This document shows, one piece after another, positions 13,394-57,922 of a DNA stretch of 64,000 nucleotides; the first letter of the stretch is position 1; the number at the start of each line of letters is the position of its first letter. The position numbers were made by a program, and so were the translations under genes. The stretch spans positions 1 through 64,000 of the IMG/VR virus record IMGVR_UViG_3300005965_000002; one strand, given 5' to 3'. Under the pieces are notes generated by a model that saw only the letters and a list, made by a program, of their open reading frames with translations, made no database searches and had not been told where the DNA came from.

Positions 13394-13825
13394 ATGATAA
13401 TCAAAAAACTGGAAAAATATGCTTCTATCTTAGAAGATAGAGGTATGAAAAAGCAGGCTTTTGAAATAGATTTAATTTGCAATAGCATAGAAAAAGCAGC
13501 TTTTAAGTTTCCATGGACTAAGAAAAAAGAGCAAGACAAAGCTGAACTTGAGCAACTTATAGGTGACCGGGTAAAGAGCGATAATAAGTTTCTGGCTAAT
13601 AAGATTGAGATCTATGATCGTCAAAAAAACTTTTCTTCTGAGGGCCGCGTAAGGACCAAAAACCCTCCTAAAGAATTTAAGAACAAGTTTGTTGAGGGTC
13701 CAGATGGGTATTGGTACCTTCAGGATGATAGAGCGATGAGCGTACAGAAGTTTCCAGATAAAATGGTTCTATACGATGACTCTAAAGACCTTGGCGTACC
13801 GGTCCAAGGGTTAGAGATAATGTAA
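13394..13825 (+). CDS. hypothetical protein carrying the recurring LExKGxxKxAxxxD motif
   Basis: RBS AAGGAG; N-terminal motif shared with ORFs 24393, 27907 and 57509. Confidence 0.7.
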   Translation: MIIKKLEKYASILEDRGMKKQAFEIDLICNSIEKAAFKFPWTKKKEQDKAELEQLIGDRVKSDNKFLANKIEIYDRQKNFSSEGRVRTKNPPKEFKNKFVEGPDGYWYLQDDRAMSVQKFPDKMVLYDDSKDLGVPVQGLEIM

Positions 13826-13931
13826 AGACCGACCTCAGCTTCATAGGTTTAGCGTTGTTTCGCCTGCCACGCCTCAGCAGAGGGCCCGGGGTTCTGCGGG
13901 CCCAGGCGCACTTCCTGGTTTCTGGTCTTTA
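13823..13931 (-). ncRNA. putative structured small RNA within the tRNA array
   Basis: GC-rich island closed by TAAAGACC/GGTCTTTA; internal GGGCCC hairpin whose loop GCAGA matches downstream TCTGC. Confidence 0.55.
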
Positions 13932-13940
13932 ATGTAAAAA

Positions 13941-14025
13941 TGGGAGCACTAGGACTCGAACCTAGGAAGGCCGCTACAGCCGCCGGAGCTACAATCCGGT
14001 GCATTCGCCGCTATGCTATACTCCC
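13941..14025 (-). tRNA. tRNA-Tyr(GTA)
   Basis: CCGGA-TTGTAGC-TCCGG, long variable arm; no CCA. Confidence 0.9.
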
Positions 14026-14041
14026 TTAATCGGTAGTTAAA

Positions 14042-14124
14042 TGCTGACGGAGAGACTCGAACTCTCATGAGCATAAGCCCACCAGGTCCTGAACCTGGCG
14101 TGTCTACCATTCCACCACATCAGC
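14042..14124 (-). tRNA. tRNA-Leu(CAG)
   Basis: CCAGG-TTCAGGA-CCTGG; no CCA. Confidence 0.92.
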
Positions 14125-14130
14125 GAAAAA

Positions 14131-14204
14131 TGGAGACGGGATCGGGATTCGAACCCGAGATGGGAGTTTTGCAGACTCCTGCCTTACCGCTTGGCTATCC
14201 CGTC
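14131..14204 (-). tRNA. tRNA-Cys(GCA)
   Basis: GGAGT-CTGCAAA-ACTCC; U73; CCA. Confidence 0.93.
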
Positions 14205-14290
14205 TTAAAAGGAAGACTCTATGAAACAGAGTCTTCCCTCTATATAAAAAGGACAATTTCCTAACTAATGTGCCTATCAATGCGTCAAAA

Positions 14291-14302
14291 TGTCAAAGAG
14301 CA
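14291..14302 (-). promoter_or_regulatory. boxA-like antitermination element TGCTCTTTGACA
   Basis: One mismatch to rrn boxA TGCTCTTTAACA; lies upstream of a hairpin+T4 (14207-14237) and the tRNA block. Confidence 0.7.
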
Positions 14303-14308
14303 ATCTAA

Positions 14309-14458
14309 CTATCGAGTTTTGATGATCTTCACTCGATCTATTCTTTTTCTAACTTCTTCTTCAGGCATCATAGCTACCATACGCCGAGCTTGAGCCTTGC
14401 TTACACAAATTCTTTTTTCAATCAATCCGTCAATGAGTTCGTTTTTCTTATCTTCCAT
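14309..14458 (-). CDS. 49-aa protein with S4-like motif (not in ORF track)
   Basis: RBS AGGAGG; MEDKKNELIDGLIEKRICVSKAQARRMV... Confidence 0.55.
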   Translation of the reverse strand: MEDKKNELIDGLIEKRICVSKAQARRMVAMMPEEEVRKRIDRVKIIKTR

Positions 14459-14474
14459 ATCTCCTCCTAAACGC

Positions 14475-14715
14475 AAAAAACCCCTCCCAGGTTTGCTGGA
14501 AGGGGTTTTTCTAACTATCGGTATCTTTTGCTTATTTCGTTAGAAGTTCCTCCCAGCTACTATTGTATTCGCACAGAGATATGAATACAATAAGGTCCAT
14601 GCGGCTGATGTCAGCACGGTATGCAAGGACTGTAGTGTGGAGGATGTCGATTTCATTTCTTTTTTCCCTTAAACAAGTTCATTCCTAATATACCTTTTTT
14701 TCGCTGGATATTCAA
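14475..14715 (-). promoter_or_regulatory. attenuator 1: promoter TTGAAT-N17-TATATT, leader ORF 14656-14540, antiterminator, terminator 14510-14475
   Basis: Leader MKSTSSTLQSLHTVLTSAAWTLLYSYLCANTIVAGRNF; GCTGGGAG..TTCTAAC pairs with GTTAGAA..CTTCCAGC of the terminator 5' arm. Confidence 0.85.
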
Positions 14716-14926
14716 AGAATTTTTTCCAGCTTTTCTTTTTGGTATGGAACCGAATAGATTCGCTTCCTTCAAATTATATTCTTCTCTAATCTTAATCAGC
14801 ATCTCTTCAGGGATAGAATCCGGGACACATAGACTTAGTAAGTCTATGAAATTAAAGGTAGTACGCAACTGCTCTCTTGAGGTACATCCCTTTATCATCC
14901 TAATACATTTCGAGTAGACGGCGTCT

Positions 14927-15334
14927 TTATTTAATGACGCCTTTGGCTCGGTCTCTTTCACACGTATCGCAGGTACAAGCCGGGGCATGAGCTTTTCCCT
15001 CCGTTTGATAGTTCACTCCGCAATCCTTCAGAAGCTCTTTAAGTTGAGAATCTGTGTGGTCATACCAGTTATCGCGGATAAATAGTTTTTCTTTTTTATT
15101 AAACAGCTTTCCTTCAGTTTCCTTATAGACAGTCATCTTGCATGAGCGGCCATTCACATAATCCAGGCTGAGCTTTATGGACGGGTCTTTTTTGTGTACA
15201 CTAATTAGACCTTTTGCCTGCTCGTCAGTAAGGGGGTCAGGGGTGAATTGTAGAAAACCCATTCCCAGAGGCCGTGATAGTTCATACACCTTCTTAACAA
15301 ACTTTACCAAGTCTATGCCGGTAACTTCAATCAT
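14927..15334 (-). CDS. hypothetical phage protein
   Basis: ORF track; PLGMGFLQ...DYVNGR motif; RBS AGGAG. Confidence 0.65.
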   Translation of the reverse strand: MIEVTGIDLVKFVKKVYELSRPLGMGFLQFTPDPLTDEQAKGLISVHKKDPSIKLSLDYVNGRSCKMTVYKETEGKLFNKKEKLFIRDNWYDHTDSQLKELLKDCGVNYQTEGKAHAPACTCDTCERDRAKGVIK

Positions 15335-15343
15335 CAGTAGCTC

Positions 15344-15961
15344 CTATTGCTTATGCTTTAAAGTAAAATTGATTGTGTCATTCAGTACTGATCTATCAAG
15401 GATCATAAATCTTCCGAAACCTGTTTTACTGATTGTAGAAGAAAAACTTATTCTATCGTTAAGAGAAAATCTATTTAGTTGACCAAGCCAGTAGTCCAAC
15501 ATTTTTTGCATAGGTTTACTGTGCGTTTTTCTTATGATCACAGAGCTATCTATCATGAGGTATTGATCGCTTGCGCTAAGAAAAAGTTCTTTTTGTTCCT
15601 TTAAAACTTCCTGGGAGGATTCTGGGCTATGTTTAATTAGGTAATCTATTTTTTCAATAAAGGATTCTTCGTCACTACTGCTAAAGAAAAGAGCATCTAA
15701 ATCAGGATCAAGAGTTACTTTTTCAATTAGACTCTTTAAATGTTCAAAATTAGTAATATGTCGATTCCCGTCCAAGTAGACATTTATTTTGTATTCATTT
15801 AAGCAAAAATGAGGTTGCAGTTTGTAGTATTTGTTACTGTAAAGACCACTATTCTCTGCACTGAACTTAGGGAAGACTTTTACGTTCCAACCCGGAGCAT
15901 AAATATTAGGGGAATCCGTGATCAGAACAAAATCAAAGCCTGAATTACTAAAACGGCTCAC
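15344..15961 (-). CDS. DUF616-like glycosyltransferase-fold protein
   Basis: LITD, KYYKLQPH, VYLDGN, DRISF; an upstream VIYTAIFGDYD segment suggests an earlier start. Confidence 0.6.
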   Translation of the reverse strand: MSRFSNSGFDFVLITDSPNIYAPGWNVKVFPKFSAENSGLYSNKYYKLQPHFCLNEYKINVYLDGNRHITNFEHLKSLIEKVTLDPDLDALFFSSSDEESFIEKIDYLIKHSPESSQEVLKEQKELFLSASDQYLMIDSSVIIRKTHSKPMQKMLDYWLGQLNRFSLNDRISFSSTISKTGFGRFMILDRSVLNDTINFTLKHKQ

Positions 15962-16276
15962 ATTCTGAGGCGCGTCATAATCCCCAAATATAGCAGTATA
16001 GATAACAGTGCGAATAGTTCAATATACTTTTTTGAAAAGGTTATTTAAATCTAAATTTCCACCAGGGGTCACATCCCTTCCCATAAAACCGATAATCAGA
16101 AATATTCCAGGAGCAGTAGTACTTTTTATACCCTCCCCCATCCGGAACAGATTCTGATCTTCTTATCTTCCGGTTTGCCTGGTTTTTGTAGTACGCCCTG
16201 GATTTACCTTCGCTGGTTATCCAGAGGTTTTTGCGGTAAGAACGAGACATGTAAAACTCCTTGAAAAAGTTGAGTC

Positions 16277-17830
16277 TTACATTTTGTCCCTCCTTTTTTT
16301 CCATCTTTTCATAAGTTCTTTCTCCATATATTCTTTGGAAGGTTTCTTACCTTCTTTTTCAACGTATTCGTCCTCGATATCATTAACTATTCCAATAGCT
16401 ACTCCAACCTCAGGTCCAGCTTTTATATCGAGCAGTTCTTTTATCTCATTGCCGTTTAGGGGCGGCTTCTTCGATACAGGTACTTTTCTAGCTTGTTCTA
16501 TTTTTTCCCTTAGCATAGGAATTGAGTTACTAGGAGGTATTTTACCTAATTGATCTGCTTCAGCTAAATCGAGTAGAGAATCTACCAATTCGTCCCCAAT
16601 GCTTCTAATGAAACGACGTAATGCCTTTTCTGTAAGCTTTCCTTCTTCTAGATCTTTCGCCAAGGCATGGGGACGCATATGGTTTCTAACCATCTTTTTA
16701 ACCTTGTCGATATCTTTGACCTTAAAGTTCAGCCTCCTCATTATGCCCTCGGCTATTTCAGAGGCGGCAGCTTCATGGCCGTGGTGCTTTATTTCACCCT
16801 CCATCATAGATCTTGTTGCGGGCTTTCCAATGTCGTGCAGCAGAGCTGCCATCTGATTATTAAGACCAGGCTTTGCATTATCAAGCACCATAAGAGTGTG
16901 CGTCAATACATCACCTTCCTGGTGATGCCTCTCTGATTGCGTTTCCTCTTGTAGTGCTTTTACCTCGGGCAGTATGTGCTCAAGAAGACCGGTATCTCTC
17001 ATAAATTTAATCATAGAGGATAGTTTACCGTAATCAGCTATTTTTTCCATTTCCTCTTGGATACGCTCACTCGAAATGATATTAATTCGGTCTGCATTTC
17101 TTTTTACGGAGTCTATCATGTACTGTGGGATCTTCCAGTTGTATTTAGCTTTGAATCTCACAAGTCTGAGCATTCTCAATGGATCGCTCGTAAACATTTC
17201 ATCCAGGTTTACTTTCGGATGACCAGTAAGGTTTCCTTCTTCTATATCCTTCCGGCTACGCCCGGTAAGATCTTTTATCTCACCGGTAGATAAATCTTTT
17301 AAGAGCATGTTGACCGTAAAGTCACGCCTCATTATATCTTCCTCTACGGTGCCCGGCTCGGTTACTCTTTGCCTGGATTTAGGATCGGGAAAGGATTCCT
17401 TCTGGGAGTCAGCAAATTCTATTACTGCGCCCTGAGTCTGGTAGAGGTCACCTTTATAGTTAATGTTTTCCTTAAAGGTAATCTGCCATATCGGGTAAGA
17501 TTTTCCCATTTGATAAGGAGTCGATACAGATCCTGGATTCTCTTTGTTTAACGTAGTATTGATATATTTGGTCAGCTCTTCTGCGCCACCCCCCTTAGGG
17601 CTATCTACCATTATATCCAGGTCTTTGGCTTTTATTGAAGGATCTTTTTTTATTTTACTCAGATACTCATCGCGGACGTAACCGCCGACAGCATAAGCCT
17701 TACCTTTCCAAGGAGTGGTTGGTAGCCAATCTTTAAAAAGTCTTTCTACTTCTTTTTCTGCATCCGCAGCTACCTTTTTTAAAAGGTGGTTAGCTGCTTC
17801 TCTCAGTTTCGCTGCTGTCTTGAGTTCCAT
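16277..17830 (-). CDS. cca: CCA-adding tRNA nucleotidyltransferase with HD domain
   Basis: AVGGYVRD, DLD, RRDFTVN, DPLRMLR, SERI, LLHDIGKP motifs. Confidence 0.92.
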   Translation of the reverse strand: MELKTAAKLREAANHLLKKVAADAEKEVERLFKDWLPTTPWKGKAYAVGGYVRDEYLSKIKKDPSIKAKDLDIMVDSPKGGGAEELTKYINTTLNKENPGSVSTPYQMGKSYPIWQITFKENINYKGDLYQTQGAVIEFADSQKESFPDPKSRQRVTEPGTVEEDIMRRDFTVNMLLKDLSTGEIKDLTGRSRKDIEEGNLTGHPKVNLDEMFTSDPLRMLRLVRFKAKYNWKIPQYMIDSVKRNADRINIISSERIQEEMEKIADYGKLSSMIKFMRDTGLLEHILPEVKALQEETQSERHHQEGDVLTHTLMVLDNAKPGLNNQMAALLHDIGKPATRSMMEGEIKHHGHEAAASEIAEGIMRRLNFKVKDIDKVKKMVRNHMRPHALAKDLEEGKLTEKALRRFIRSIGDELVDSLLDLAEADQLGKIPPSNSIPMLREKIEQARKVPVSKKPPLNGNEIKELLDIKAGPEVGVAIGIVNDIEDEYVEKEGKKPSKEYMEKELMKRWKKRRDKM

Positions 17831-18441
17831 CGATTAATTCCCAAAAATGATCGTTAACAGCTTGAGCTATATCCGGGTCTAGATCTTTTTGGCCCGATAT
17901 TAACTTTTCATGAAATCCTTTAAGGATGTTTTCTTTTTCAGCTTCTTCCATATTCACCATGTTATACAGATTGGTCCTAAGTAAAAACCCTTGCATACTT
18001 TCATTAAATGCTGAGAATTACGAGGGTCGTTCCTAGTAACCAAAAGGCGTGTGAGTCTCCAATCGAACGGGGTAAACTGGATACCAAAGTCTTCTATTTT
18101 CATATGGATTTTTACCCACCACTTTTTATCTCTTTCCTTCTGCTCTTCTTTAAATTTTTCGTAATCTTCGTCCGGGACGTAATCTGTCGGCTCAGCTTTT
18201 TTCATTTGCTCTATTACTTTTAATATGTCATCGGTTTGCTCATCTGGAAAATCGAAGCAGAGTCCTACGCCTTCATCTTCATCGTCATCAGAATCTTTTA
18301 ATAGCTGCCAGATGGCGCACCCAACCCCATCCTTATATCGAATCTTCTCACCTCTTATTTTACCACTCTTAAACCTTATAGTGTCATCCATCTTTTTATC
18401 CTTGTTATTGTTACTTTTTACACGAAGATATTATTAAAGGA

Positions 18442-18927: not shown

Positions 18928-19717
18928 CCTTATAATCGAATTTGATAGAATGTAATAAGCTTGAATAATTTCGATTGAATGGTTTGGGTGTAGTTGTTTG
19001 AGTTATTTGGCCCCAGGTAGCAGGCTCGACAAATCTACGTCTTATTTTATAGCCGTCATAAGCTCTGTAATGGGGCAGCATCAATTCATTTATTTCTTTT
19101 TCCCCTACGAGGTTTTTTAGGTTTCTTTTCTTCTTCATTATTATCTGTTTTCTTAAAGCTGTTAATGTATCTTTTTTTCATTTCCTCAGTTTCATAGTAA
19201 GGACACTTACAAGAATCCGGTTCTATGACTTTTAAAACTGTCGGTATAATGATATCACATTTACCATTTTCTTGATTTAAACAGCTTTTTAAATTGCATT
19301 CATTCGTCTTTTTCTTGGTTATCTTCTCGCTCTTTTTGCCAGACAATTTTTACATCCCTCTCTAAATTGTATATCCTGTCATCTAATAATTCCCGGAAGC
19401 TTACGCCCATTGGTACCTTTCCAAGGGATTTTATTGAAAGATAATAGGTACCGCCCATCTGGACATTAGTCTTACGAAGAAGCTGCCCTTCAATGTAGTC
19501 CAACCTCCGAGTATCGTTGATAGAGATGGCTTGTTCCGGTTTTTGATTCCATTGAGTCCTGCAATTTGGCTCATTACACTGGCAGGTTAACCGTGTGCCG
19601 TCATTACTGAAATAGGCATTGATTTTAGCGCTCTTACAGTTAGGGCAGCAGGGCAATAGTAATCGGTTGCTGTACATAATAATCCTTTAATATAGTTCTA
19701 TTAAGAGAGGTATATCT

Positions 19718-20053: not shown

Positions 20054-20387
20054 TAGAATATACTAATTAAAATAACTATTTTAAATCACTTTTTATCGAG
20101 CATATCTAGCTTGTATAAAAGTCCTGCTGTTTTGTGATCCACCAGATGTCCGTGGAAGGTATTTGCTGAGGATCCAGGAGGGGTGTAAGGAGCATACCAT
20201 TTGGTCTTTTTCTCAACCTCTGATAGCTCCCGGGGCTCGTCGTAGGCTCCGATTTCAGTAGCATTACAGTGCTCACAGTGGTAGGGCCCACACTGTACGT
20301 ACCCTACTTCTACATCAACCCAATCTGCTTCGCATTCTGCTCCACAGTACGGGCATTTTTTCTTCGGCCTCTCGTACGCCGATCTCA

Positions 20388-24304: not shown

Positions 24305-24392
24305 ATACTTTTTTCAGAAAGTTTAGGAACCCATTAATAATCTTATAATATTTTCTTGTTATAAGATATTTTCTGTAAAGAGGGGCTACATA

Positions 24393-26543
24393 ATGGATTG
24401 GGTAGGATTAAGTTTATTTGGATATAGAGAAGCTGCAAGAAAATTTAAAAAACCTGCAGATCTTCAGTCTATACTAAAGACCATCAATATCACCTCAGAA
24501 CAATTTGAAGAGATTCGAAAAGAGGTGGCTCAAAAAGATACAGCCGGGTTAAAAGTAACTGCTCAGACTTCTGGGGCTATTGAATTATATGATCCGATCA
24601 TCACCTACCTTACTTGGATAGTACTACACGACAAGTTTAAATCTAAAAAAGAAAAGCCTGAATATCCTACTCACCAAGAATATGATTTCTTTCATGATTT
24701 ATTAGTTGCTGGTAAATTTGATGATATAAGAAAAATCATATCTAATGATAATGTTCCTCGTAACCAGCTACAGCAATATATACAGAAATTTCAGTCTTCC
24801 AATAAGTCAGATAATAAGCTCACCAAAGAAGATTTGAAAGTTTTAAATAATAAAAAAGAAGTAGTTGATTTAGGGGGAGGGTGGTCTTGGATAACCCTAG
24901 TAGATGATCAAGGCAACATAAAAGGTGGTTCTACGGTACTTACTAAAATACTAGGTCACTGTGGTAACGGTGAAGGTTTACCTGGAGATAAAATGTATCT
25001 ATTAAGTAATAAAACCATGGGACTTATACCTACTATCAAAGCTACAGTTATTGTTGATGGTGAAGGAAAAATCAGGGAGTCTAAGGCTTCTTTCAATAGA
25101 AAGATAAACATTAATAAATATGGGGGTGCCTTCTTAAAACTTCTTGAGCAACCTTTCGTAAAAGGCCTAGACGATAGTGGTGCTTACATGGCTGATTCAA
25201 ATCTCCATATGAGTGACTTTTCTGGTACTCCTTTTGAAGAACAAGCCAAGGCTCTTATAGAGAAAAAACCTAATCTTATGAATAATGATTTTGATCAAGT
25301 TATTACTAAATATAAAGATGAAGTATCAAGTCTCTCCCCAGAAGATAAAAAAGACGAATTACGGAAATTATTAGAAGATGGTCATATAAATTTAGTACAA
25401 GCTCGCGCCTTGAATGGCGGAAAATTTCCCTTTACAGACGACGAGTTGGTCGGTATGATTGATGGGGGATTAGATATAGGAAAGATAATTTCTGCCGGTA
25501 ATAGCTTATTTAGCCTTAAAGTGCAGCAAGCTTTAGCAAAAAAAGATCCTTCAAAAAACATCTCTTACATGCTTTACATGGCAGCTACTTTAAATAACAG
25601 TCCTATAGATAAAAAAATTCTTATAGAGGGTCTTAATTCCGCAAAAAAATTTAAAATGAATAGCTTTGCAGGTGATGTAGGAGATGAGACAAAAAATAAA
25701 TTAACTTCTTACTTGAAAAAGAATACTGATTTATTGTCCGCTTATCTTAAGAAAGATCCCTCGGCTATAGATTATTTCCCTGAAGACCAGCGAATGCATA
25801 TATTTAATAAAATGCCCGAGGCGTTCGCCGAAGTGTTTAAAAAAGTTCCTTCGGCTATACGTTATTTCCCTGAAGATAAAAGGATGGATATCTTTAACCA
25901 AATGCCCGAGGCGTTCGCCGAAGGGTTTTATGAAGACCCCTCGTCTATTGGTTATTTCCCTGAAGATAAAAGGATGGATATCTTTAACCGAATGCCCGAG
26001 GTGTTCGCCGAAGGGTTTAAAGAAGTTCCTTGGTCTATAAGTTATTTCCCTGAAGATAAAAAGATGGATATCTTTAACCGAATGCCCGAGGCGTTCGCCG
26101 AAGGGTTTAAAAAAATTCCTTCGGCTATAGGTTATTTCCCTGAAGACCAACACGGTTATATAAAGGAAACTATAAGAAAAATAAATGAGAAGAATAGAAC
26201 AAAGGAAGCGGCTACTATGAACAAGATATCTACCCTGTTAGACACAATAGCCAACCGATTGGAAGCAAAAGGCCTAATTAAGGAAGCTTTCAGCTTAGAT
26301 ACAATAGCAAATACTCTTGAAAAATGTGCTGCTATAGATCCATATGCGGCTACCTTGATAGCCCATGCAAAAGGTAATATGAATCAAATTCAGCAAGCTG
26401 CTCAAGATGTTAAGCAACTAGGGAAGAAAGGTATAGAATCGGTAGGCCCTGTAGAAGAAGTATTAGAAAAGCATAACTTAACTTTAAAGTCCAAGGATGA
26501 GGCTGCTTTAGAAAATCTTTGTGCTAATCTTTTAAAGATCTAA
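24393..26543 (+). CDS. large hypothetical protein with 30-aa tandem repeats and the shared motif near the C-terminus
   Basis: 716-aa ORF; preceded by TAATAATCTTATAAT. Confidence 0.75.
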   Translation: MDWVGLSLFGYREAARKFKKPADLQSILKTINITSEQFEEIRKEVAQKDTAGLKVTAQTSGAIELYDPIITYLTWIVLHDKFKSKKEKPEYPTHQEYDFFHDLLVAGKFDDIRKIISNDNVPRNQLQQYIQKFQSSNKSDNKLTKEDLKVLNNKKEVVDLGGGWSWITLVDDQGNIKGGSTVLTKILGHCGNGEGLPGDKMYLLSNKTMGLIPTIKATVIVDGEGKIRESKASFNRKININKYGGAFLKLLEQPFVKGLDDSGAYMADSNLHMSDFSGTPFEEQAKALIEKKPNLMNNDFDQVITKYKDEVSSLSPEDKKDELRKLLEDGHINLVQARALNGGKFPFTDDELVGMIDGGLDIGKIISAGNSLFSLKVQQALAKKDPSKNISYMLYMAATLNNSPIDKKILIEGLNSAKKFKMNSFAGDVGDETKNKLTSYLKKNTDLLSAYLKKDPSAIDYFPEDQRMHIFNKMPEAFAEVFKKVPSAIRYFPEDKRMDIFNQMPEAFAEGFYEDPSSIGYFPEDKRMDIFNRMPEVFAEGFKEVPWSISYFPEDKKMDIFNRMPEAFAEGFKKIPSAIGYFPEDQHGYIKETIRKINEKNRTKEAATMNKISTLLDTIANRLEAKGLIKEAFSLDTIANTLEKCAAIDPYAATLIAHAKGNMNQIQQAAQDVKQLGKKGIESVGPVEEVLEKHNLTLKSKDEAALENLCANLLKI
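25758..26150 (+). repeat. 90-nt (30-aa) tandem repeat, 4 full copies plus 1 partial
   Basis: TATTTCCCTGAAGA recurs at 25773, 25863, 25953, 26043 and 26133. Confidence 0.95.
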
Positions 26544-27410: not shown

Positions 27411-27906
27411 TAAACCTTAGACTTTTAAGCTAGGCCACTTACAGGTTATTAGCAATCCAGCTAGGAGCTCCTGCATACATCTTCAAGTAACCGCCTCCAG
27501 CCGATCCCTGTGTTTGGGTAGGCTTAACCTCAGTCTCAGTAGAGGGGGCACCATTTACCGGGTTGTTTCCGGCAGAATTATCCACAACGTCTCCACTAGG
27601 ATTACCCATGTTGGTATCTTTGGTCTCGAAAGTTGTGTTAATAGAGAATCCGCTCATTCCAGCATAAGAAGTATCTGTAGACATAATTTCCCCTTTATTG
27701 AGTTATTTTCAACGATTGTCTCAAAAGTATCGCTATGAACTATTAAATATTAAATGATTATTAATTTTTGTATGGAGGAGTTAAGTCACCATTTTTATCG
27801 ATAAATCCTTTTTTCTCAAGGAAAGCTCGTGCCGCTTTTTTACTCCTGCATATCTTTCTAGAGTATGCCCTTAGAGCTTTTATTTCTCTTTTTAGTTCTT
27901 TTTGTG

Positions 27907-28539
27907 TCATTTTATAAGGTTATGCTTATGAGCTATATCTAAAATGATTTTACATGTCCAGGCATCAACACCCGTAACCTCAGCAACTGAGTGCTCGGTG
28001 TCTGCTCCCTTATTAAAAGCTTGAATAACAAGATAGGCTTTTTCGGGGGGGATATCATTGTTCGCTATTTCATCGCTGAAACTAATTACGTTAATAGAAT
28101 CCCAGTTGGACTCGATGGTATTAGCTATAATATCCATTAAGTAAGATTCTTCGAAGGCTCCTTTTTCTTCTAAAGAATTTGCTATCTTTTCAATAGCCTG
28201 TATGGCGAGCTTAAGCGATAATTGCTCAGCTTCTTGCTTAGGTTCCTGCTTAGGTTTTTTCTCGGGCTTTTGCTTTTTTGCTCCTATCCTATCTATATCT
28301 AAATATTTTCTCCATTCCGAGAATGAAAAAGGATCCTTGCCCTTTTTTGGGCATACATAATCGACAAATTTAAAAAATTTTTGAAGTTTGTCGTAGCGGG
28401 TAGAGGATAAGGAGCGGGGCTCCCATTCCTTTAAAGGAATAGGAGTAACGGTATACTCTTTACCGTTATATAGAAAGGAAAACTGGCGTAAACCGGTATC
28501 GTGGTCTTTTGTCTCGCTTGTTACAATCGGATTCTGCAT
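27907..28539 (-). CDS. hypothetical protein with the shared IANxLExKG motif
   Basis: AIEKIANSLEEKGAFEESYLMDIIANTIE. Confidence 0.7.
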   Translation of the reverse strand: MQNPIVTSETKDHDTGLRQFSFLYNGKEYTVTPIPLKEWEPRSLSSTRYDKLQKFFKFVDYVCPKKGKDPFSFSEWRKYLDIDRIGAKKQKPEKKPKQEPKQEAEQLSLKLAIQAIEKIANSLEEKGAFEESYLMDIIANTIESNWDSINVISFSDEIANNDIPPEKAYLVIQAFNKGADTEHSVAEVTGVDAWTCKIILDIAHKHNLIK

Positions 28540-29563
28540 ATTTCCTCCTGCAACAATCGAGTTATAATGAATAGATAATTATAACGTAAGAATCTCTGTT
28601 TCACCAACGTCTTCAGGTAGTTCTTCGACTACCATCTTTGTGCTTTTATCCTTAGTGTTAAACCAGAAAAATATCTGATTATGATGGGTTGTAAAGGATT
28701 TTTCATCAAATTTGTCATTAGATGTGGTAGGGAATATCTCCTTATGTTCCTTTATAGCTCTTTCAATTAATCTTTTTCTTATGCTTTCCATGATTGTTTC
28801 CTTCTTTATTTTTTAACTGATTAAACAGTTTTTTTGTATTATTTATCATTGTTTTTAAGATATTAGGATCTTCTATATATTTTACGTTATCAGGGTTACT
28901 CTCGCTTACACAAATTAAATCAGATAGTATTGTGTCTGATATATCGTGAGACTCAACAATGTTGAAGAAAAAGTCGATCCCTTTTTCTGTAAATATTTTT
29001 TCCTTTAAATTAGCACAACACCGGGGCGTGCGGCTATTCTCATTATCTAAAAATTCCCTGGAGTTATCCAATAGAGTTGTGAATAAATCATACTCATAAA
29101 AATAGCTTTTTTGTCTCTGATATAACGTTTTAGTTCTTCATATGTAATTGATATTTTGTATGTTCTTTTAGACTGAATCTTCAAGGATCCATTATGCCTT
29201 GAAATATTAACCTTTGCTGGATCTGTTTTTTTATAGTTTTTTGACATCCATATAGGTTCATAATTATCGACTGAACGGTATCTATCTATATCTTCTTCTA
29301 CGTTATCGGAGTGGACATAGCCGGAGGAAGCCCACTCATCCAGATCATTATCATATATCGCTCTAGAAGCAACTTCCCAGGCTACTGAGTTACCACCTGT
29401 CTCCTTGCTTATAGTCTGATACAATACATAATACTTTTTCAGATCAAATTCTATGCCCATATGGTTTTCAACGGTATCGCCCACTTTATCTGTTTTAAGT
29501 ATAGCAATGAGCTCAACTTCTTTCAAGTCTTTAAAAGCTTCTAAGCATTTATCAATAAATACG

Positions 29564-30807: not shown

Positions 30808-30968
30808 TTTAATACTCTACTTTATCCGTCTCAAAGGATATACCAGTTTTTTTGACGATAACAGTTACCTGTATATGCTTTAAAGGGATTGGTAAAGGCG
30901 GTAAATAAATGTCTTTTCTATACGGATCATATCTTTTAATCGAAGGAACGAATGGTAACAGTTTTAAG

Positions 30969-31041
30969 CGCCCCCGAAAGGATTCGAACCTTTGACTGAC
31001 TGGTTTTAGGGACCACTCCTCTACCACTGAGGTACGGGGGC
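30969..31041 (-). tRNA. putative amber-suppressor tRNA (anticodon CTA), Trp-like anticodon arm
   Basis: TGGT-CCCTAAA-ACCA; perfect acceptor GCCCCCG/CGGGGGC; G73; C33. Confidence 0.7.
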
Positions 31042-43707: not shown

Positions 43708-43763
43708 ATAAAATCCTCCTAAACTATTAATATAAGTTAAAAGGATTTTATATTAGTTGATTA

Positions 43764-44063
43764 TTATCCAGCCTGAATTTCGGTGCAGAGGCGCAAAGGC
43801 GGGCCCGCTAGTCTGCTTTCGACCATTTCGCAGGTTTCCAAATTTCCCTGGTACGCTATAGCTTTACCATTATTGTGGGCTTCTATAGTAATAGAGTAAG
43901 CTTTGTTTAAATCGCATTTGACTGATCTTTGTACATGGATCACCACTTCTTCGAAAGAATGGTGCTCATCGTTAAAAAGCACTACCTTATGCGGCTTACC
44001 TAAAAGCGTGCTTATATCTGTTGTGGTCTTTAGATCGGGAGTTTGAATACTACCGCTATTCAT
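43764..44063 (-). CDS. clpS: ClpS-like N-degron adaptor
   Basis: KVVLFNDEHHSFEEV...AHNNGKA. Confidence 0.85.
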   Translation of the reverse strand: MNSGSIQTPDLKTTTDISTLLGKPHKVVLFNDEHHSFEEVVIHVQRSVKCDLNKAYSITIEAHNNGKAIAYQGNLETCEMVESRLAGPPLRLCTEIQAG

Positions 44064-45982: not shown

Positions 45983-46051
45983 ACTAAGAACTATATAATA
46001 ATCTTTTAATATAATATACTTTTTTGTACCACTAAAATACAAAGGAATATT

Positions 46052-46843
46052 ATGAAAAATTGTTTATTGTGCGGAGACCTTATTCCAAATTGGATTAAAA
46101 TAGACGGGAAAAGGAAAAATATATCCAGTCGAAAATACTGTTTAAAATGTTCGCCTTATAAAAAACACAACACAAAAAAGTTACACTTAAATAGTAACTC
46201 CGAAAAATTTAAAAAATGTAAAAGCTGCGGTAAAAAACAATCTATTGATAAATTCAGAAAAAGAACAGATAGAGAAAATTTAAGGGTGCCTTATTGTAAA
46301 AAGTGCCAAAATAAAGAGATGCTGATTAGATATAAAAAAAGACACTATAAATTAAAACTCAAAGCTGTTAAATACCTGGGCGGGAAATGTCATGTTTGTG
46401 GTTATAGTAAAAACATACATGTTTTAGACTTTCACCATAAGAACCCAAAAATTAAAAAAGGAGAATTTATAAAATTTAAAAGCGAAGCACGCATTGAGAA
46501 AGAACTAGATAGGTGCGTGTTACTTTGCTCTAACTGCCATAGGGAGCTCCACTATAATGTAAAGAGTTCTAAAATAATTAAAAAAGACACAATAAGAATA
46601 AAAAAGCTGTTGCTTAGTCTAAAGCAAAAAGCTGTTACATACCTGGGAGGGAAATGTTCTGCCTGCGGCTATAAAAAATGTATAGCCGCGCTTGAGTTTC
46701 ACCATATTTCAAAGAGCAAAGAATTTAATATATCAAAGCCTAAATCAATAGTATTTGAAAAAATAAAAACCGAATTAGATAAGTGCTCCCTATTATGCTC
46801 TAACTGTCACAGGGAAACACATCATAATAGTTGCAAAAAATAG
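46052..46843 (+). CDS. free-standing endonuclease with two HNH domains
   Basis: Two copies of GGKC..CGY....L.FHH...C.LLCSNCHRE.H. Confidence 0.88.
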   Translation: MKNCLLCGDLIPNWIKIDGKRKNISSRKYCLKCSPYKKHNTKKLHLNSNSEKFKKCKSCGKKQSIDKFRKRTDRENLRVPYCKKCQNKEMLIRYKKRHYKLKLKAVKYLGGKCHVCGYSKNIHVLDFHHKNPKIKKGEFIKFKSEARIEKELDRCVLLCSNCHRELHYNVKSSKIIKKDTIRIKKLLLSLKQKAVTYLGGKCSACGYKKCIAALEFHHISKSKEFNISKPKSIVFEKIKTELDKCSLLCSNCHRETHHNSCKK

Positions 46844-50620: not shown

Positions 50621-50647
50621 TTATTGGGTTTAAATTAAACTTCATAG

Positions 50648-52731: not shown

Positions 52732-52752
52732 ATTATCTTATTTATTAAAAAA

Positions 52753-52828
52753 TGGCACGCCCGCCAGGACTCGAACCTGGAACCCTGGGATTAGAAATCC
52801 CATGCTATCTCCATTTAGCTACGGGCGC
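52753..52828 (-). tRNA. tRNA-Arg(TCT)
   Basis: TGGGA-TTTCTAA-TCCCA; CCA. Confidence 0.92.
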
Positions 52829-53618
52829 ATTAATACCTCTTCAATATACCCACGAATTACTTTAGGAGTAATCCGTATCTGTTTTTTACGATTTGCTTCC
52901 TCGAATTCTTCTTTCGACATTTCTACGAATTCCCAGATTTTCATCATATAGAAGTCTTGTTCTGGGGAAAGAAATTTAATGTTTTTCTTTTGTATCTCCC
53001 ATCTCCAGCAGTGCTCATTTACCATTATTTTTCGAGCTAATGCTACCGATCTTCTTTTTTTCGGAGATGTTTTTGATTTCATGTATTTTTGTACATTATA
53101 CGGCTTCCGACTTGTTCTATGGGTTTTACACATAAAGTGCAAACTCCCTGGTATTCAACATACTAACCACCTGAAGCTGTGATGAATACCTCCCGGTCAT
53201 AATCTTCAGAACATTCAGTTGAACAGACGTATTCAAATTCTGCGGTTTTCATAAATTTTAGCGGAAGATTAATTACCGGGTGAGGTATGGGTTTTCCGCA
53301 ATGAATACATCTGGAAGCGTATTTCTTTAAACGCTTCAGTGGTGGTTTTCTTATGAATAAATTATTAAACCATTTCATCCAAGAGCCCTCGGTTTTTCAG
53401 CTCTTCATTAATCATGTCAACAATAGAATCAAGAACATGCTCAGGGGTTCCATATAATTCATCAAGATTGTCACTCTCTGACTGTTCTATTAATTTAGAG
53501 CGTACATCAGAGATCACGCTTTTATATTTGTCGCCATTAAGAGCATCTTTGAATGCTTGTTCTTCGGCATACATATCAAATTTTAATATCAGCTTAGGCA
53601 TACTAACTCCAAGGGCTT

Positions 53619-53670
53619 CTGACGTACTCCCACGACTGAAGTCGTGGGCTTTCCCGCTCACTCTCGTAAA
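53619..53670 (-). mobile_element. 52-nt palindromic IS200/IS605-end-like element, copy 2
   Basis: Identical to 40597-40648. Confidence 0.75.
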
Positions 53671-53868
53671 AGGCGAGCAATACATAGCTGCCTTTTGGAT
53701 ACCACTGTAACTAAGGATTTCAGAGATTTTAATTGCTGTAATTTCGGCCTGATTTTTTCCTGCTTCTGTAAGCTCAATCTTGTAATCCGGGACTGTAAGA
53801 TACACGTCTTTATCAACATTCCCTGTTGATTGGCCGTGACGTACTAAAAAAATTTTACGGGGTTTCAT
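53665..53868 (-). pseudogene. histidine phosphatase (phosphoglycerate-mutase family), truncated at the palindromic element
   Basis: IFLVRHGQS..N, LT..G..QA, YCSPFTR, then element-derived sequence. Confidence 0.75.
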
Positions 53869-53931
53869 CTGATACCTTTATGCTTCGCGTAGGGCCTATT
53901 ACAATATACTTATCAGAAGCTATTTTTTAAA

Positions 53932-54543
53932 TCAATAAACGAATTCTTCCCAAGGAGTTTGGGAATAGATTTTCCAGATAAAAGAGTCTAATTCAGCTGG
54001 GGTCATTTTCCTTTTATGGGACTCCAGGGCAAATTCTTTTTCTTTTTCGAGATAATCTTTCGAATTTTTAGGAGGATCCCACAGCATATATTTGATTATA
54101 TGGGTATCTATTATGGCTAATTCTATAGCTCCAAGATTTCTAAGGAAATGGCTGGATGTTTTCATACCGAAGCCGTTAACGTTTTTACAAAGCCACTCCC
54201 TTACTTCTACCCAAGGCCTTTCGCTTCTAATCAAGTCATAGATTTGGTTAAATTGAGATTTGGCCAGCAGGAGCCTGTTAGCTTTAACCTTATGGAATCG
54301 GGTAGTCCAAATCAATGAATCCACCTGCTTGAGGCTCAGGGTATTGCAATAAAAACCACTCGAAATGATGTTACTAATAGCAATACAATTACTCTTGTAG
54401 GTAGTTTGGGGTGTCATGAGACAAAAGCACATATCATAGAAGATCTGTTCTTTTGACTTCAATATTCTGAAGGAATTTATGACTTTTTTTAAGAATTTTC
54501 TATCAGCATCTGGAATCGAGTAGCGAGAATTCTTAGTATACAC
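53932..54543 (-). CDS. 8-oxoguanine DNA glycosylase/AP lyase (Ogg-like)
   Basis: FCL.TPQ, RF..VKA, REWL..V.G.G.K.SSHFLRN.G, AIIDTHI. Confidence 0.88.
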   Translation of the reverse strand: MYTKNSRYSIPDADRKFLKKVINSFRILKSKEQIFYDMCFCLMTPQTTYKSNCIAISNIISSGFYCNTLSLKQVDSLIWTTRFHKVKANRLLLAKSQFNQIYDLIRSERPWVEVREWLCKNVNGFGMKTSSHFLRNLGAIELAIIDTHIIKYMLWDPPKNSKDYLEKEKEFALESHKRKMTPAELDSFIWKIYSQTPWEEFVY

Positions 54544-54593
54544 TCTAATCTCCGGTTTATACCTAAATACTATTTTGAAAAAGTTATTTAAAA

Positions 54594-54666
54594 TAGCCCA
54601 GCAGGGACTCGAACCCCGAGACCAGGATTAGGAATCCTGTGCTTTGTCCTGTTAAGCGACTGGGCC
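54594..54666 (-). tRNA. tRNA-Arg(CCT)
   Basis: CAGGA-TTCCTAA-TCCTG; no CCA. Confidence 0.88.
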
Positions 54667-55482
54667 TTTTTTCTTTTTCAGTATAAACCCGATTATCCAG
54701 GTCATTACTCCGCTACTAATTATAAACCCGATAATGGTTTTCCAGTTGTTTTCCCAAAATCTGCCAGCTATAAAAGTAGGATTTACAGCCACTTTTATAG
54801 TGTCCGTATATGTTACGATATCATAGGTTTCATCCGAGAATCCTTCTCTTTTCAAGATGCATACTATTTTCATTTTTAATATATTTGTGCCACCGCTTAC
54901 AGGAGTAATCCCCCATTTCCATACGGTAGGCTTATCAAATTTTCGTAACTGAGTGGATGAGCTATAAGTGGTATCAATGCGGAACCCGTCACCAGATAAT
55001 TCAGCTTTCATTGTCTGGCTTACATCGATAATTTTTAGAGTATATTTTTCTCCTAAACCTTCAGTTAGTGCCTCAGAAATTTTATTATCGATTCTGAGCT
55101 TAACTTGATACTCTTTTCCCATTTTAATTGTATCTGGTACCTCGTAAGCTATTGCTCCAGAGGTAAGTTGAGACTGAAGGACCCAGGCGGCATCTCTATG
55201 AGAAAAATCCTCTCCGGCTGCTGCTGGAGAGGATCCTTCAATCTGTATAGTTCTTAAATTGATACGATCTAATTGTTTGGTTTCTTCTTCCCAGCTTGAA
55301 GGAGCTGGGGGAGGCATCCCAGCCCAATAGTCTTCTTCGTACTCATAGGTATCGGGGGAGGGTGTCATCTCTTGATAATCTGGTGAGATTACCGGAGGGG
55401 GTGCTGATGTATCATCTTTAAAAGTTTTTTTACCTCCACAAGAAACAATAGTAGCCAATAAGATTAAAAACATCCACTTCAT
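54652..55482 (-). CDS. putative lipoprotein with C-terminal transmembrane segment
   Basis: Lipobox-like IVSC; hydrophobic C-terminus followed by KKKK. Confidence 0.65.
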   Translation of the reverse strand: MKWMFLILLATIVSCGGKKTFKDDTSAPPPVISPDYQEMTPSPDTYEYEEDYWAGMPPPAPSSWEEETKQLDRINLRTIQIEGSSPAAAGEDFSHRDAAWVLQSQLTSGAIAYEVPDTIKMGKEYQVKLRIDNKISEALTEGLGEKYTLKIIDVSQTMKAELSGDGFRIDTTYSSSTQLRKFDKPTVWKWGITPVSGGTNILKMKIVCILKREGFSDETYDIVTYTDTIKVAVNPTFIAGRFWENNWKTIIGFIISSGVMTWIIGFILKKKKGPVA

Positions 55483-55496
55483 AATTACTCCTTTAA

Positions 55497-55568
55497 AGCC
55501 GGTGAAGGGACTCGGACCCCCAACCTACGCATTACGGGTGCGTTGCTCTACCGTTGAGCTACACCGGC
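55497..55568 (-). tRNA. tRNA-Thr(CGT), with C33
   Basis: ACGCA-CCCGTAA-TGCGT; no CCA. Confidence 0.85.
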
Positions 55569-56269
55569 TAGTATCCTAATTCAGATGCTGCTTGAACAAT
55601 TGGATCTGGCATCTTGATCTGCGTATAGGATGTCTTATTTTTATATACCTGGAGTTTCTCTATTTTCTCCCCCACAAAATCAGAGATTCTTTTTAATTCG
55701 TGATCCTGGTTTTCTATAAAATCTTCCATTTTTACCACTATCGATCTTTCTGGGTAAGGAACAGATTTTATAATGTCGTATTGAAGCTTCCAGCTCCATA
55801 AGCTTATATTTGCGTTTTTTAATCCACCAAACGCTCCAAAATGATTTAACAGCTTATCGCTATAGTGAGGGGCATTTCTCATTGGATTGCGAAACCAGAG
55901 TACATAGTAAAACTCAGGATATAGCCTAGTAAGCCAGGGATAGATAAAAGTTGTTTCTGGAAGCTTCCACCCTTTTTTTGGAGATTTATCGAGTAGAATG
56001 TCATGCAGATACCGGCGAATATCCTCGGCATCTTTAGCAGTGCAGCCTTCTATTGCTGGTTGTAGATTATAGTGATTGCCATCAAATTTAATTTGACTGA
56101 TAAACCTTTTGGCAATATCATACATTAAAGCATAGGGTTCCTTATCATAGCTTACATTCCTAAACTGAGGGGAACCCATAAAAAATCCGCTACTAGAAAA
56201 AGTTTTTGCTATTAATCTAGAAGCAGAAGATCCACGACCAATGATTGTTACAATCTTAGGACTCATCAC
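55568..56269 (-). CDS. sulfotransferase-family protein
   Basis: IIGRGSSASR, GWKLPET, FRNP, VKMEDF. Confidence 0.7.
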   Translation of the reverse strand: MMSPKIVTIIGRGSSASRLIAKTFSSSGFFMGSPQFRNVSYDKEPYALMYDIAKRFISQIKFDGNHYNLQPAIEGCTAKDAEDIRRYLHDILLDKSPKKGWKLPETTFIYPWLTRLYPEFYYVLWFRNPMRNAPHYSDKLLNHFGAFGGLKNANISLWSWKLQYDIIKSVPYPERSIVVKMEDFIENQDHELKRISDFVGEKIEKLQVYKNKTSYTQIKMPDPIVQAASELGY

Positions 56270-56489
56270 CTTCCTCTACTTCGTTACAGGCTATGCTTGC
56301 GTTTGCCCACATGATCGCTTCGCGTAGCTTTTCTATCGCTTTGTTAGTTTCCTCGCCTTCGGGGCAAAGCTTGACAATCTTTTTCGCTAGTCTTTTTCCT
56401 GCAGTCCTGAGAGTTTCATAACGATCGGGTTGGTCTCCACCCGGTCTGTGGTAGCTAAAAATGTTTTCGATTTGGTCTTTTGTAATCAT
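56256..56489 (-). CDS. Acb2/Tad1-like small helical protein
   Basis: FSYH.P..Q..RY..LR...CP...AIEKLREAIMWANASIA; start at ATG 56489. Confidence 0.65.
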   Translation of the reverse strand: MITKDQIENIFSYHRPGGDQPDRYETLRTAGKRLAKKIVKLCPEGEETNKAIEKLREAIMWANASIACNEVEEGDES

Positions 56490-56509
56490 CTTATCTTCTC
56501 CATAAAAAT

Positions 56510-56584
56510 TGGAGCAGGAGACGAGACTCGAACTCGCAACAATCACCTTGGAAGGGTGGGGCTCTACCATTGAGCTACTCCTGC
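56510..56584 (-). tRNA. tRNA-Gly(TCC)
   Basis: Loop CTTCCAA; U73; CCA. Confidence 0.92.
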
Positions 56585-57508
56585 ATATATTTAAATGTTT
56601 TTGGTTTTCTCTATATTTTCACTAATAAATTGCCTGACTTTTTTCCTAGATTTTTTCTTTTCCTTTATTTTCTACAAACTCTTCGCCTCTTTCCCAGGCT
56701 GCTATCTTAGCGTCTGCCTCTGATTCATGCATAATTATAAGAGACCCGTCCTTGCAGTCGAAACCAACAGGACCTGAAATAGAAACTTCTTTGAAATCGT
56801 AAATCACCAGATATTGCTTAGAATCCTCTGTTATCAATATCGCTGGTGTCTCGTCTAATCTTAACTTTCCTTTATAGCCTTTTTCCAGTAAATGACCAAC
56901 GGCTTTAGAAAGTATCTTCAGTTTTTTTGGAGAGGCTAGTCCCTCATAACTGAGGCGCAGAAACTCCTTAAAATTTTCCTTCGTTAGTAGTCCTGACTCA
57001 AGAGCTTCAAAAATAGCATCCGATGCATTTTCTACTGTGAGCTCAGGATCCAAATCCGGGCTATCCTCAAAGTTTATCATTCTCAGCTCAACTCTTTAAA
57101 CAAACTTATATAATTGTCTGCGATTTCCCTGTCTGACTTCTTCTCTTCTTCGCTGAGATTTTCATACTCGGAAAGCATTTGCCTTACCCAGCGGGCGACC
57201 TTTTCCTCGGGGATCAAAATAGCACCAAAAGAAGTAGGCTCACATTGCTTAAAAAGGTACTTCATTTAGTGAGACCATACATCATGGCAGTGCCTAGCGA
57301 TCTCTTCCTTAGGATCCTTATCTTTTTTAGAAAAAGGATTAATTTTCTCAGGGTTTACTGGTAATTCCCCAGCTTCGGCATTTTCTCTAATCTGGCGTAA
57401 GCTCCAGGGTTCGCTGTCTCTCATAATATGTTTTACCAATATTTTGATATTAAAGAATTATTTCACTGATTAACTACTAATATTCTGCAATTTAAAAAGG
57501 AGTATCCT

Positions 57509-57922
57509 ATGCATAGAATATCAGAATATTTAGACTCTCTTTCTAATATATTAGAGAGCAAAGGATTTTTAAAGCAGGCTGAGCATATTGATATGCTTAC
57601 TAACACAGTAGATGGGTTATGGCTCTGCTCATGCTGTCAGAAGCCCACGGTAAATAGTATAGAAGATCGTTACATGGTAAACGATGATATATGGAGAGAG
57701 CTGGGTTTCCCGGGCCAAGTAGATGGCATTCCTGATGACTACTTTTTATGTTGGAGCTGTCTTATTATGGCAGTTTCGAAAAAGTTAGGTAGAGGGCTTT
57801 CATCTGCCGATTTTGCTCAATATATGCAGTACCCTATAAACGTAAATAATCCGAATATAATTGATCTTATGAGGGGAGAAATGGACCAGGTAGGACTCGA
57901 ACCTACGACTGCTCGATTATGA
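57509..57922 (+). CDS. hypothetical protein with the shared N-terminal motif
   Basis: RBS AAGGAG; LDSLSNILESKGFLKQAEHIDML. Confidence 0.7.
   Translation: MHRISEYLDSLSNILESKGFLKQAEHIDMLTNTVDGLWLCSCCQKPTVNSIEDRYMVNDDIWRELGFPGQVDGIPDDYFLCWSCLIMAVSKKLGRGLSSADFAQYMQYPINVNNPNIIDLMRGEMDQVGLEPTTARL

Follow-up and report, generated by a model that had tools for sequence, protein, structure and literature searches.

A portable, predicted helical-hairpin tag on unrelated proteins of huge bacteriophages and its possible role in head assembly

The window analysed here comprised 64,000 nt (positions 1 to 64,000) of IMG/VR record IMGVR_UViG_3300005965_000002, part of a 258.6-kb genome of a tRNA-rich huge phage from hypersaline-lake metagenomes. 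Four genes in this window, A to D, encoded proteins that shared one conserved module of about 35 residues with a 28-aa core. Gene A (nt 13394–13825, + strand) encoded a protein of 143 aa that matched no Pfam, PHROG or NCBIfam family, had the core at its extreme N-terminus (nt 13409–13492; tag HMM, E 8e-14), and lay on the + strand among minus-strand neighbours, as did gene B. Gene B (nt 24393–26543, + strand) encoded a 716-aa protein possessing five 30-aa tandem repeats (about residues 455–600) that were only weakly DUF4116-like (Pfam, E 0.11, below cutoff), followed by the core at residues 616–643 (nt 26238–26321; E 5e-18), which was the copy closest to the family consensus, and a 73-aa tail. 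Gene C (nt 27907–28539, - strand) encoded a 210-aa protein with an N-terminal domain, a K/E/P-rich linker, the core at residues 116–143 (nt 28111–28194, - strand; E 2e-14), and a C-terminal part with only a weak winged-helix hit (PF24409, E 0.003, below cutoff); a minor strain variant in one metagenome carried one synonymous change and one Met-to-Leu change in this core. Gene D (nt 57509–57922, + strand) encoded a 137-aa protein in which an N-terminal core (nt 57530–57613; E 1e-14) was followed by a Cys-rich, zinc-ribbon-like domain (phrog_6053, E 2e-6), and its last 41 nt overlapped tRNA-Met on the other strand.

A promoter-like motif, TAATAATCTnnTAATAT, was located upstream of each of the four genes. 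A perfect match ended 41 nt before the start codon of B (nt 24335–24351, + strand; PWM score 23.1 bits, rank 9 of 274 genes), whereas those of A (nt 13352–13368, + strand; 3 mismatches, 13.7 bits against a shuffled 99th percentile of 8.1, rank 36), C (nt 28565–28581, - strand; 4 mismatches, 13.8 bits, rank 34) and D (nt 57467–57483, + strand; 3 mismatches, 12.7 bits, rank 37) ended 25 nt before the respective start codons. Only 39 of the 274 genes had the motif; it preceded all six tagged transcription units of the genome as well as the tail-sheath, tail-fibre and head genes, but homing-endonuclease genes also. Late expression of the tagged genes is supported only by inference.

The original prediction, that four unrelated proteins share a helical pattern of about 30 residues, was confirmed, although the positions it gave were those of gene ends rather than of the motifs. 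In leave-one-out HMM searches of all 3548 six-frame ORFs of the genome, each left-out copy was the next-best hit at E 1e-5 to 1e-8, with noise beginning at E > 0.04. The copies shared 8–14 of 28 residues and 52–60% of nucleotides with a third-codon identity of only 25–57%, indicating that they are old and kept at the protein level rather than recent DNA duplicates. With the tags masked, no pair of bearers was similar (best BLASTP E 0.083). A weaker copy had also been claimed for the N-terminal extension of the CCA enzyme (nt 16277–17830, - strand; TIGR02692, E 8e-57); this was not supported, since a 156-instance tag HMM did not detect the extension even at permissive thresholds.

Two further copies were found outside the window. 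One was the C-terminal tag of a DEDDh exonuclease (genome nt 143810–143893), the 40%-identical orthologue of which in a syntenic relative ended before the tag, showing that the tag is gained or lost on orthologues. The other was a divergent copy at residues 301–336 of a 405-aa, 40%-charged, mostly helical protein (nt 118870–120087) that had no family or fold match. This gene was situated in the head module, in the order portal, 126 aa, 98 aa, the 405-aa protein, 190 aa, prohead protease, 357 aa, 183 aa and major capsid protein. All 22 orthologues of the 405-aa protein, down to 30% identity, kept the variant hairpin, and the synteny was kept.

A profile search of 1.84 billion proteins returned 617 bearers at E ≤ 1e-3. 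Of the best 150, 143 were true, a few TPR-like false positives being present among the hits, and these 143 held 169 tags (109 N-terminal, 49 internal and 11 C-terminal), one to three per protein, on at least 89 unrelated families. The proteins seen included an exonuclease, 5'-nucleotidases, a SET-domain protein and one bearer with a C39 peptidase domain; about 10 of the 143 (about 7%) had a membrane-like segment, one of them being a TMEM65-domain protein with three tags. The same consensus occurred in contigs binned with gut bacteria. No Pfam-A, NCBIfam or PHROG model and no PDB chain covered the module.

AlphaFold2 predicted for the segment at nt 26208–26357 of gene B an alpha-hairpin with helices at residues 6–20 and 24–43 of the 50 aa (core pLDDT 96–97), and the same hairpin was predicted in the 405-aa protein (pLDDT about 80–85). 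Each helix had an L/I/A seam at positions a/d/e, which leaves a surface for further helix packing. The net charge of the tag was -3.8 and always negative, and about ten polar surface residues were extremely conserved (D26 100%, E14 98%, N30 97%). The tag ended in E (81%) or D (17%) followed by A, K or S, with T at P3.

Related phages carried 4–12 tags per genome. Tags and the head-protein family were both present in this genome and in G001, G002, G004 and G008 (records of related phages), and G006, found through the tag alone, also had the family. Both features were absent from three phages with a related capsid protein, LR745208 (74% identity), Tunturi_5 and Bacillus phage G. This co-occurrence may only reflect shared ancestry of one clade, and several of the records are fragments. 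In G002, a canonical tag gene sat inside the head module, directly upstream of the protease gene, and five consecutive genes shared only the tag.

As to function, the original prediction of a portable tag on likely late genes acting as a capsid-packaging or targeting signal was partly supported: portability is strongly supported and far more general than was visible in the window, while capsid targeting is the best-supported reading but circumstantial, resting on the paralogous hairpin in a head-module protein, the co-occurrence of the two features, and the tag gene inserted in the head module of G002. Tentatively, the tag may be an autonomous docking module, in a clade of huge phages, that tethers otherwise unrelated proteins to the head-assembly core. 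In this view, tagged proteins would be made together with the virion proteins; their hairpin would either pack against the paralogous hairpin of the 405-aa protein or occupy the same site on the procapsid interior that this hairpin uses; and they would thereby be co-assembled into the procapsid and could leave it with the DNA. The present data establish the module, its portability, its predicted fold, the paralogous copy, the co-occurrence and the shared promoter-like motif, whereas the binding partner, actual packaging, late timing and any proteolytic removal of the tag are inferred, and the role of the 405-aa protein as scaffold or core is inferred from gene position and composition only. 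The predicted fold of the acidic hairpin suits docking, and the first 50 residues of the capsid protein, its likely N-arm, were basic (9 K/R against 4 D/E); electrostatic binding of the P22 scaffold hairpin to the coat N-arm is a precedent. However, LR745208 has a 74%-identical capsid protein yet no tags, so that a basic N-arm does not by itself call for tags. A complex prediction with the capsid protein, the C-part of the 405-aa protein and the tag scored 0.02 and counts neither way. Membrane proteins are unlikely capsid cargo, and internal or multiple tags are unlike known capsid-targeting leaders. A more far-reaching possibility, not excluded but doubtful, is that the hairpin is a natural, position-independent, structured cargo-loading domain by which huge phages load a changeable arsenal of enzymes into the capsid through a scaffold-derived hairpin for delivery into the host with the DNA; it would be the natural counterpart of engineered P22 scaffold-fusion encapsidation and, in concept, a new and much larger relative of the T4 capsid targeting sequence (CTS) system. 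If the tag is a capsid or core docking module, it defines which of the many unknown genes of these uncultured phages encode proteins delivered with the DNA, candidates for host-takeover or anti-defence factors, gives a simple sequence rule for finding them in metagenomes, and offers a compact, folded, position-tolerant tag for loading proteins into large HK97-fold capsids. Even if the destination is different, a module on at least 89 protein families that no domain library describes is a useful new family and a handle on protein-protein organisation in phages that cannot yet be grown.

Other readings were considered less likely. The tag might be a general docking or oligomerisation module unrelated to packaging, the hairpins bundling with one another or with a hub so as to gather tagged enzymes, membrane proteins and the head protein at a cytoplasmic or membrane-associated site, such as a replication, nucleotide-metabolism or virion factory. 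The a/d/e seam is the pattern of higher-order helical bundles, the nearest PDB sequences were designed hexameric coiled coils, many proteins carry 2–3 tags and would be multivalent, position in the protein does not matter, some bearers are membrane proteins, and the exonuclease and 5'-nucleotidases fit nucleotide metabolism. However, no hub candidate was found, and this doubtful alternative explains neither why the only conserved core gene carrying the hairpin lies between the portal and protease genes nor the tag gene in the head module of G002.

It is unlikely that the tag is an intramolecular or chaperone-related element, that is, a solitary TPR-like helix-turn-helix that stabilises or solubilises poorly behaved phage proteins, or recruits a folding or turnover factor, without a shared destination. 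The module has the length and form of one TPR unit, the profile cross-hit TPR proteins over positions 6–25, and its high acidity could aid solubility in a hypersaline host; but no TPR, Sel1 or other Pfam model reached the tag on any bearer, tags were solitary or separated by whole domains and flanked by linkers rather than stacked on a fold or in tandem arrays, the consensus also occurred in the gut-associated contigs, and the extreme conservation of polar surface residues argues for one specific conserved partner rather than a generic solubility role. A recognition element for regulated proteolysis or export (a degron, protease-adaptor site or secretion leader) is very unlikely, for although a terminal Glu or Asp followed by a small residue is compatible with Glu-specific prohead proteases and one bearer carries a C39 peptidase domain, internal and C-terminal positions and multiple copies do not fit a leader peptide, the motif matches neither the double-glycine leader pattern nor the T4 L/I-x-E rule at P3, and no export machinery is linked to it. 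A chance or compositional artefact of amphipathic helices in an AT-rich genome, conceivable for a short helical motif, is refuted by the leave-one-out recovery with its clean gap to noise, the hundreds of independent bearers sharing one consensus, and the nearly invariant polar positions.

Among known systems, the T4 internal proteins (IPI-III, Alt) are otherwise unrelated, fast-evolving proteins sharing only the CTS, which directs them into the scaffolding core of the prohead (PMC3012670). The tagged proteins likewise share only the tag, the five-gene cluster of G002 resembles the T-even internal-protein genes, and co-expression with head genes is inferred. The T4 CTS is an N-terminal leader of about 10–19 residues that is cut off by the prohead protease, whereas the tag is a predicted hairpin of about 35 residues occurring at any position and in up to three copies, and no sequence similarity was seen. 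The P22 scaffold possesses a U-shaped helix-turn-helix that binds the N-arm of an HK97-fold coat protein electrostatically (PMC9965877), and fusing it to foreign proteins loads them into capsids (PMC9962691). Both hairpins are two-helix motifs in a charged, largely disordered head-assembly protein, a role inferred for the 405-aa protein, and here the same kind of hairpin occurs naturally on many other proteins. However, neither Foldseek against the PDB (nothing at E ≤ 1e-3) nor a profile search of PDB sequences revealed homology to gp8 residues 264–303 (PDB 2GP8), the polarity is reversed, the P22 motif having a basic face that binds an acidic coat N-arm and the tag being acidic with a basic capsid N-arm, and the hairpin of the 405-aa protein is not at the very C-terminus.

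Encapsulation peptides of bacterial microcompartments and cargo-loading peptides of encapsulins are also portable helical tags, joined by linkers to the termini of unrelated enzymes, or sometimes between domains, and directing them into a protein shell. Encapsulin shells share the HK97 fold; capsids and compartments have been compared (PMC13185644). Those are single short helices or extended peptides in cellular compartments, whereas the tag is a two-helix hairpin in a virus with a paralogue in a head-module protein. Compared with dockerin-cohesin docking, the tag had no Ca-binding loop, no homology and no identified cohesin-like receptor, and its context is intracellular and viral; as in that system, a small module appended to diverse enzymes, presumably to bind a common receptor, has an internal two-fold sequence repeat, LDxIAxxLE occurring twice in the tag.

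The 64-kb window comprised the first part of a single 258,580-bp contig with 38.6% GC, classed as a virus record, and the locus was found in three hypersaline-lake metagenomes, all from DNA. The genome encoded a portal, a prohead protease, an HK97-type major capsid protein, a tail sheath, and a collagen-like tail fibre. Positions 1–94 kb contained mostly minus-strand genes (tRNAs, NAD synthetase, ribonucleotide reductase), whereas positions 94.8–257 kb were plus-strand and included the virion modules. Thirty-seven tRNA genes, covering nearly all amino acids, were located in the window between nt 2056 and 59314, mostly on the minus strand, and together with a CCA-adding enzyme gene (nt 16277–17830, minus strand) they represent a large translation-related arsenal for a phage. 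One of these tRNAs (nt 30968–31041, minus strand) had the anticodon CUA, that is, an amber suppressor called tRNA-Pyl by ARAGORN. However, under translation table 11 the coding density was 94% and TAG ended 57 of the 274 ORFs (21%), so another genetic code was rejected and the phage itself does not seem to be recoded.

The original prediction, that four unrelated proteins share a helical tag of about 30 residues, held: all four peptides were present in ORFs, namely gene A (nt 13394–13825, plus strand), gene B (nt 24393–26543, plus strand), gene C (nt 27907–28539, minus strand), and gene D (nt 57509–57922, plus strand). A regular-expression and HMM scan of the whole genome added a fifth clear copy, at the C-terminus of a DEDDh 3′-5′ exonuclease (genome nt 142940–143908; RNase_T, E 1e-11). 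Leave-one-out HMMs recovered every left-out copy at E 1e-5 to 1e-8 among 3548 six-frame ORFs, with noise beginning only above E 0.04. Nucleotide identity between copies was 52% to 60% and third-codon identity was near background, indicating that the copies are ancient and kept by selection on the protein; recent DNA duplication or a mobile cassette was thereby rejected. Outside the tag the bearers were unrelated (best E 0.083). The weaker copy claimed for the N-terminus of the CCA enzyme was not supported. In one lake metagenome, a minor strain variant differed at four positions within nt 28051–28167, two of which lay in the tag of gene C, one being synonymous and the other changing Met to Leu, towards the family consensus.

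An alignment of the five copies with their flanks was searched against 1.84 billion representative proteins, giving 617 proteins at E <= 1e-3 and 28 at E <= 1e-10. The hits shared a sharp 37-residue consensus, KISSALDKIANSLESKGLLKEAEELDVISNTIEALAK, in which D7, A10, L13, E14, G17, A22, D26, and N30 were near-invariant, although these frequencies are somewhat inflated because they come from the best-scoring hits. The core was always net negative (mean -3.8), on which ground a DNA-binding helix-turn-helix was rejected, and a double-glycine secretion leader was rejected on position and pattern. The two halves repeat the pattern LDxIAxxLE, and each helix therefore has hydrophobic or small residues at heptad positions a, d, and e. 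In a profile search of PDB sequences, the nearest entries were designed hexameric coiled coils with the same pattern, though not significantly (E 0.3); by inference, such a pattern leaves a second seam free for packing against further helices. AlphaFold2, with 80 aligned sequences, predicted two helices joined at the conserved Gly, with a core pLDDT of 96–97. A fold search of this model against the PDB returned only generic hairpins (Rop, designed bundles, ferritin-like) and nothing at E <= 1e-3, and no Pfam, NCBIfam, or PHROG model and no solved structure covered the module.

Of the 150 best hits, 143 carried a near-complete tag, while the other seven were TPR-like partial matches. One tag was present in 119 proteins, two in 22, and three in 2; of the 169 tags, 109 were N-terminal, 49 internal, and 11 C-terminal. 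With tags masked, the proteins fell into 89 BLASTP families, and the fused domains included NT5C nucleotidase (four proteins), DUF3228 (three), TMEM65, peptidase C39, RNase_T, and SET. A syntenic 278-kb relative (metagenome locus L016) possessed the orthologous exonuclease, 40% identical at E 1e-70, but that protein ended before the tag, whereas three neighbouring genes in that relative carried tags. Among related IMG/VR records, 12 tags were found in G002 (467 kb, 98% complete), 6 in G004, and 4 in G001, and in G002 five consecutive genes each carried one tag at a different position and shared nothing else. A tblastn search of GenBank phages gave no match with B or with the tag alone, searches of IMG/VR with B and with the exonuclease found no relatives, and a back-translated pattern found tags in only three IMG/VR records. 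A back-translated pattern scanned against the GTDB species genomes gave five hits, two being true tags on short MAG contigs and three being half-matches. A word-based protein search with residues 1–40 of A found only A itself, and an ESM Atlas search with protein A gave no lead above chance.

A richer HMM, built from 156 instances, revealed a sixth, divergent copy in this genome at E 1.4e-6, located at residues 301–336 of a 405-aa protein encoded at genome nt 118870–120087 and having a three-residue insertion in the turn. The gene order in this region was portal (nt 114696–118139), 126 aa, 98 aa, the 405-aa protein, 190 aa, prohead protease (nt 120685–122253), 357 aa, 183 aa, and major capsid protein (nt 124094–124975). 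The 405-aa protein was 40% charged and mostly helical with disordered linkers, possessing a conserved N-domain, a variable charged linker, and a conserved C-part that contains the hairpin; its model was of low confidence (pLDDT 63), and a fold search of it against BFVD returned nothing. All 22 orthologues kept the variant hairpin, and the synteny was conserved in the relatives L017 and L018 and in the IMG/VR loci. In G002, a canonical tag gene of 151 aa was inserted in this module, directly upstream of the protease gene. Tags and this protein family co-occurred in this genome (G000) and in the records G001, G002, G004, G006, and G008, of which G006 was found through the tag alone, although this co-occurrence is not corrected for shared ancestry and several records are fragments. 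Both were absent from LR745208 (capsid protein 74% identical), Tunturiibacter phage Tunturi_5, and Bacillus phage G.

The 293-aa major capsid protein (L006:19094–19975) was extremely conserved, sharing 77% to 99% identity across the best 120 of more than 1950 metagenomic relatives, on contigs up to 512 kb, whereas the adjacent 405-aa protein dropped to 30% identity across the same phages. The nearest cultured relatives were Tunturi_5 (50%) and Bacillus phage G (39%). In the 108-kb relative L018, which is more distant, type I-E CRISPR-Cas genes (Cse1 and a Cas_CT1975 gene; L018:1–1966) were located a few kb from the head module, and the portal gene of another relative (L017:5860–9270) held an intein with a LAGLIDADG domain.

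A 17-nt promoter-like motif, TAATAATCTnnTAATAT, occurred 31 times with two or fewer mismatches, 25 of these lying 10–105 nt upstream of a gene start on the same strand. In the window it was observed at nt 3076–3092, 6465–6481, 19677–19693, 24335–24351, and 45996–46012 (plus strand) and at nt 7797–7813, 27747–27763, and 43750–43766 (minus strand), with many more in genome 118–235 kb. With a weight matrix, 39 of 274 genes scored above the 99th percentile of shuffled upstream regions. This set included the tail sheath, the tail fibre, the 405-aa gene, the gene after the protease, nearly all plus-strand genes of the otherwise minus-strand left arm, and all tagged units, that is, B (perfect match), the operon that contains the exonuclease, and A, C, and D. 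The latter three were not in the training set, and in each the motif ended 25 nt from the start codon. Since A, B, and D are plus-strand genes among minus-strand neighbours, they need their own promoters. That the motif is a late promoter is an inference from the genes it precedes, and it also preceded two free-standing HNH homing-endonuclease genes (nt 3164–3718 and 46052–46843, both plus strand) that had PHROG hits, the second at E 5e-63. A third such gene is probable at nt 12536–13222 (minus strand), where an HNH signature was seen by eye only.

The original prediction had further proposed that the tag marks likely late genes and serves as a capsid-packaging or targeting signal, and this interpretation was partly supported. 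The best-supported mechanism is a docking tag that brings diverse proteins to the assembling prohead, which would work either by bundling with the paralogous hairpin of the 405-aa head protein or by using the same site on the shell. In comparison with the P22 scaffold domain, the polarity here would be reversed, as the tag is acidic and the first 50 residues of the capsid protein (its likely N-arm) hold 9 K/R against 4 D/E. The module, its occurrence on unrelated proteins, its divergent copy in the head-module protein, and the shared promoter-like motif were established by the sequence analysis, and the hairpin fold was predicted, whereas binding, packaging, late expression, and the scaffold role of the 405-aa protein are inferred, without direct binding or proteomic evidence. 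Weighing against this reading, many tags were internal or multiple, and about 7% of the bearers had a membrane-like segment, including a TMEM65 protein with three tags. A single complex prediction, combining the capsid protein, residues 280–385 of the head protein, and the tag, returned a score of 0.02 and is not evidence for or against binding. The main rival is a general oligomerisation or docking module that gathers proteins at some other site. Targeting to the capsid or core is preferred only tentatively, and the rival, although somewhat less likely, remains possible.

The module is a new domain family, whereas portable targeting tags shared by unrelated phage proteins are already known as a kind of system. 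It differs from the T4 CTS, the P22 scaffold domain, and encapsulin or microcompartment peptides in being a folded, acidic, position-independent hairpin with a paralogue in a head-module protein.

Directly before the tag of B, at nt 25750–26190 (residues about 455–600), there were five tandem 30-residue repeats of the type ...PSAI.YFPED.RMDIFN.MPEAFAEGF..., which were only weakly DUF4116-like (Pfam E 0.11, below cutoff). The last 41 nt of gene D (nt 57882–57922) overlapped tRNA-Met (nt 57882–57955) on the opposite strand; the C-terminal residues of D are therefore antisense tRNA sequence, and a homologue in another sample (P0016, 122 aa) was 15 residues shorter. A 1006-aa NAD synthetase-like protein (phrog_36784, E 6e-116) was encoded on the minus strand from nt 61976 to the end of the window at nt 64000, continuing to genome nt 64996, and genome nt 67986–71519 (plus strand) encoded a 1177-aa ribonucleotide reductase large subunit interrupted by an HNH-endonuclease-like insert, possibly an intein.
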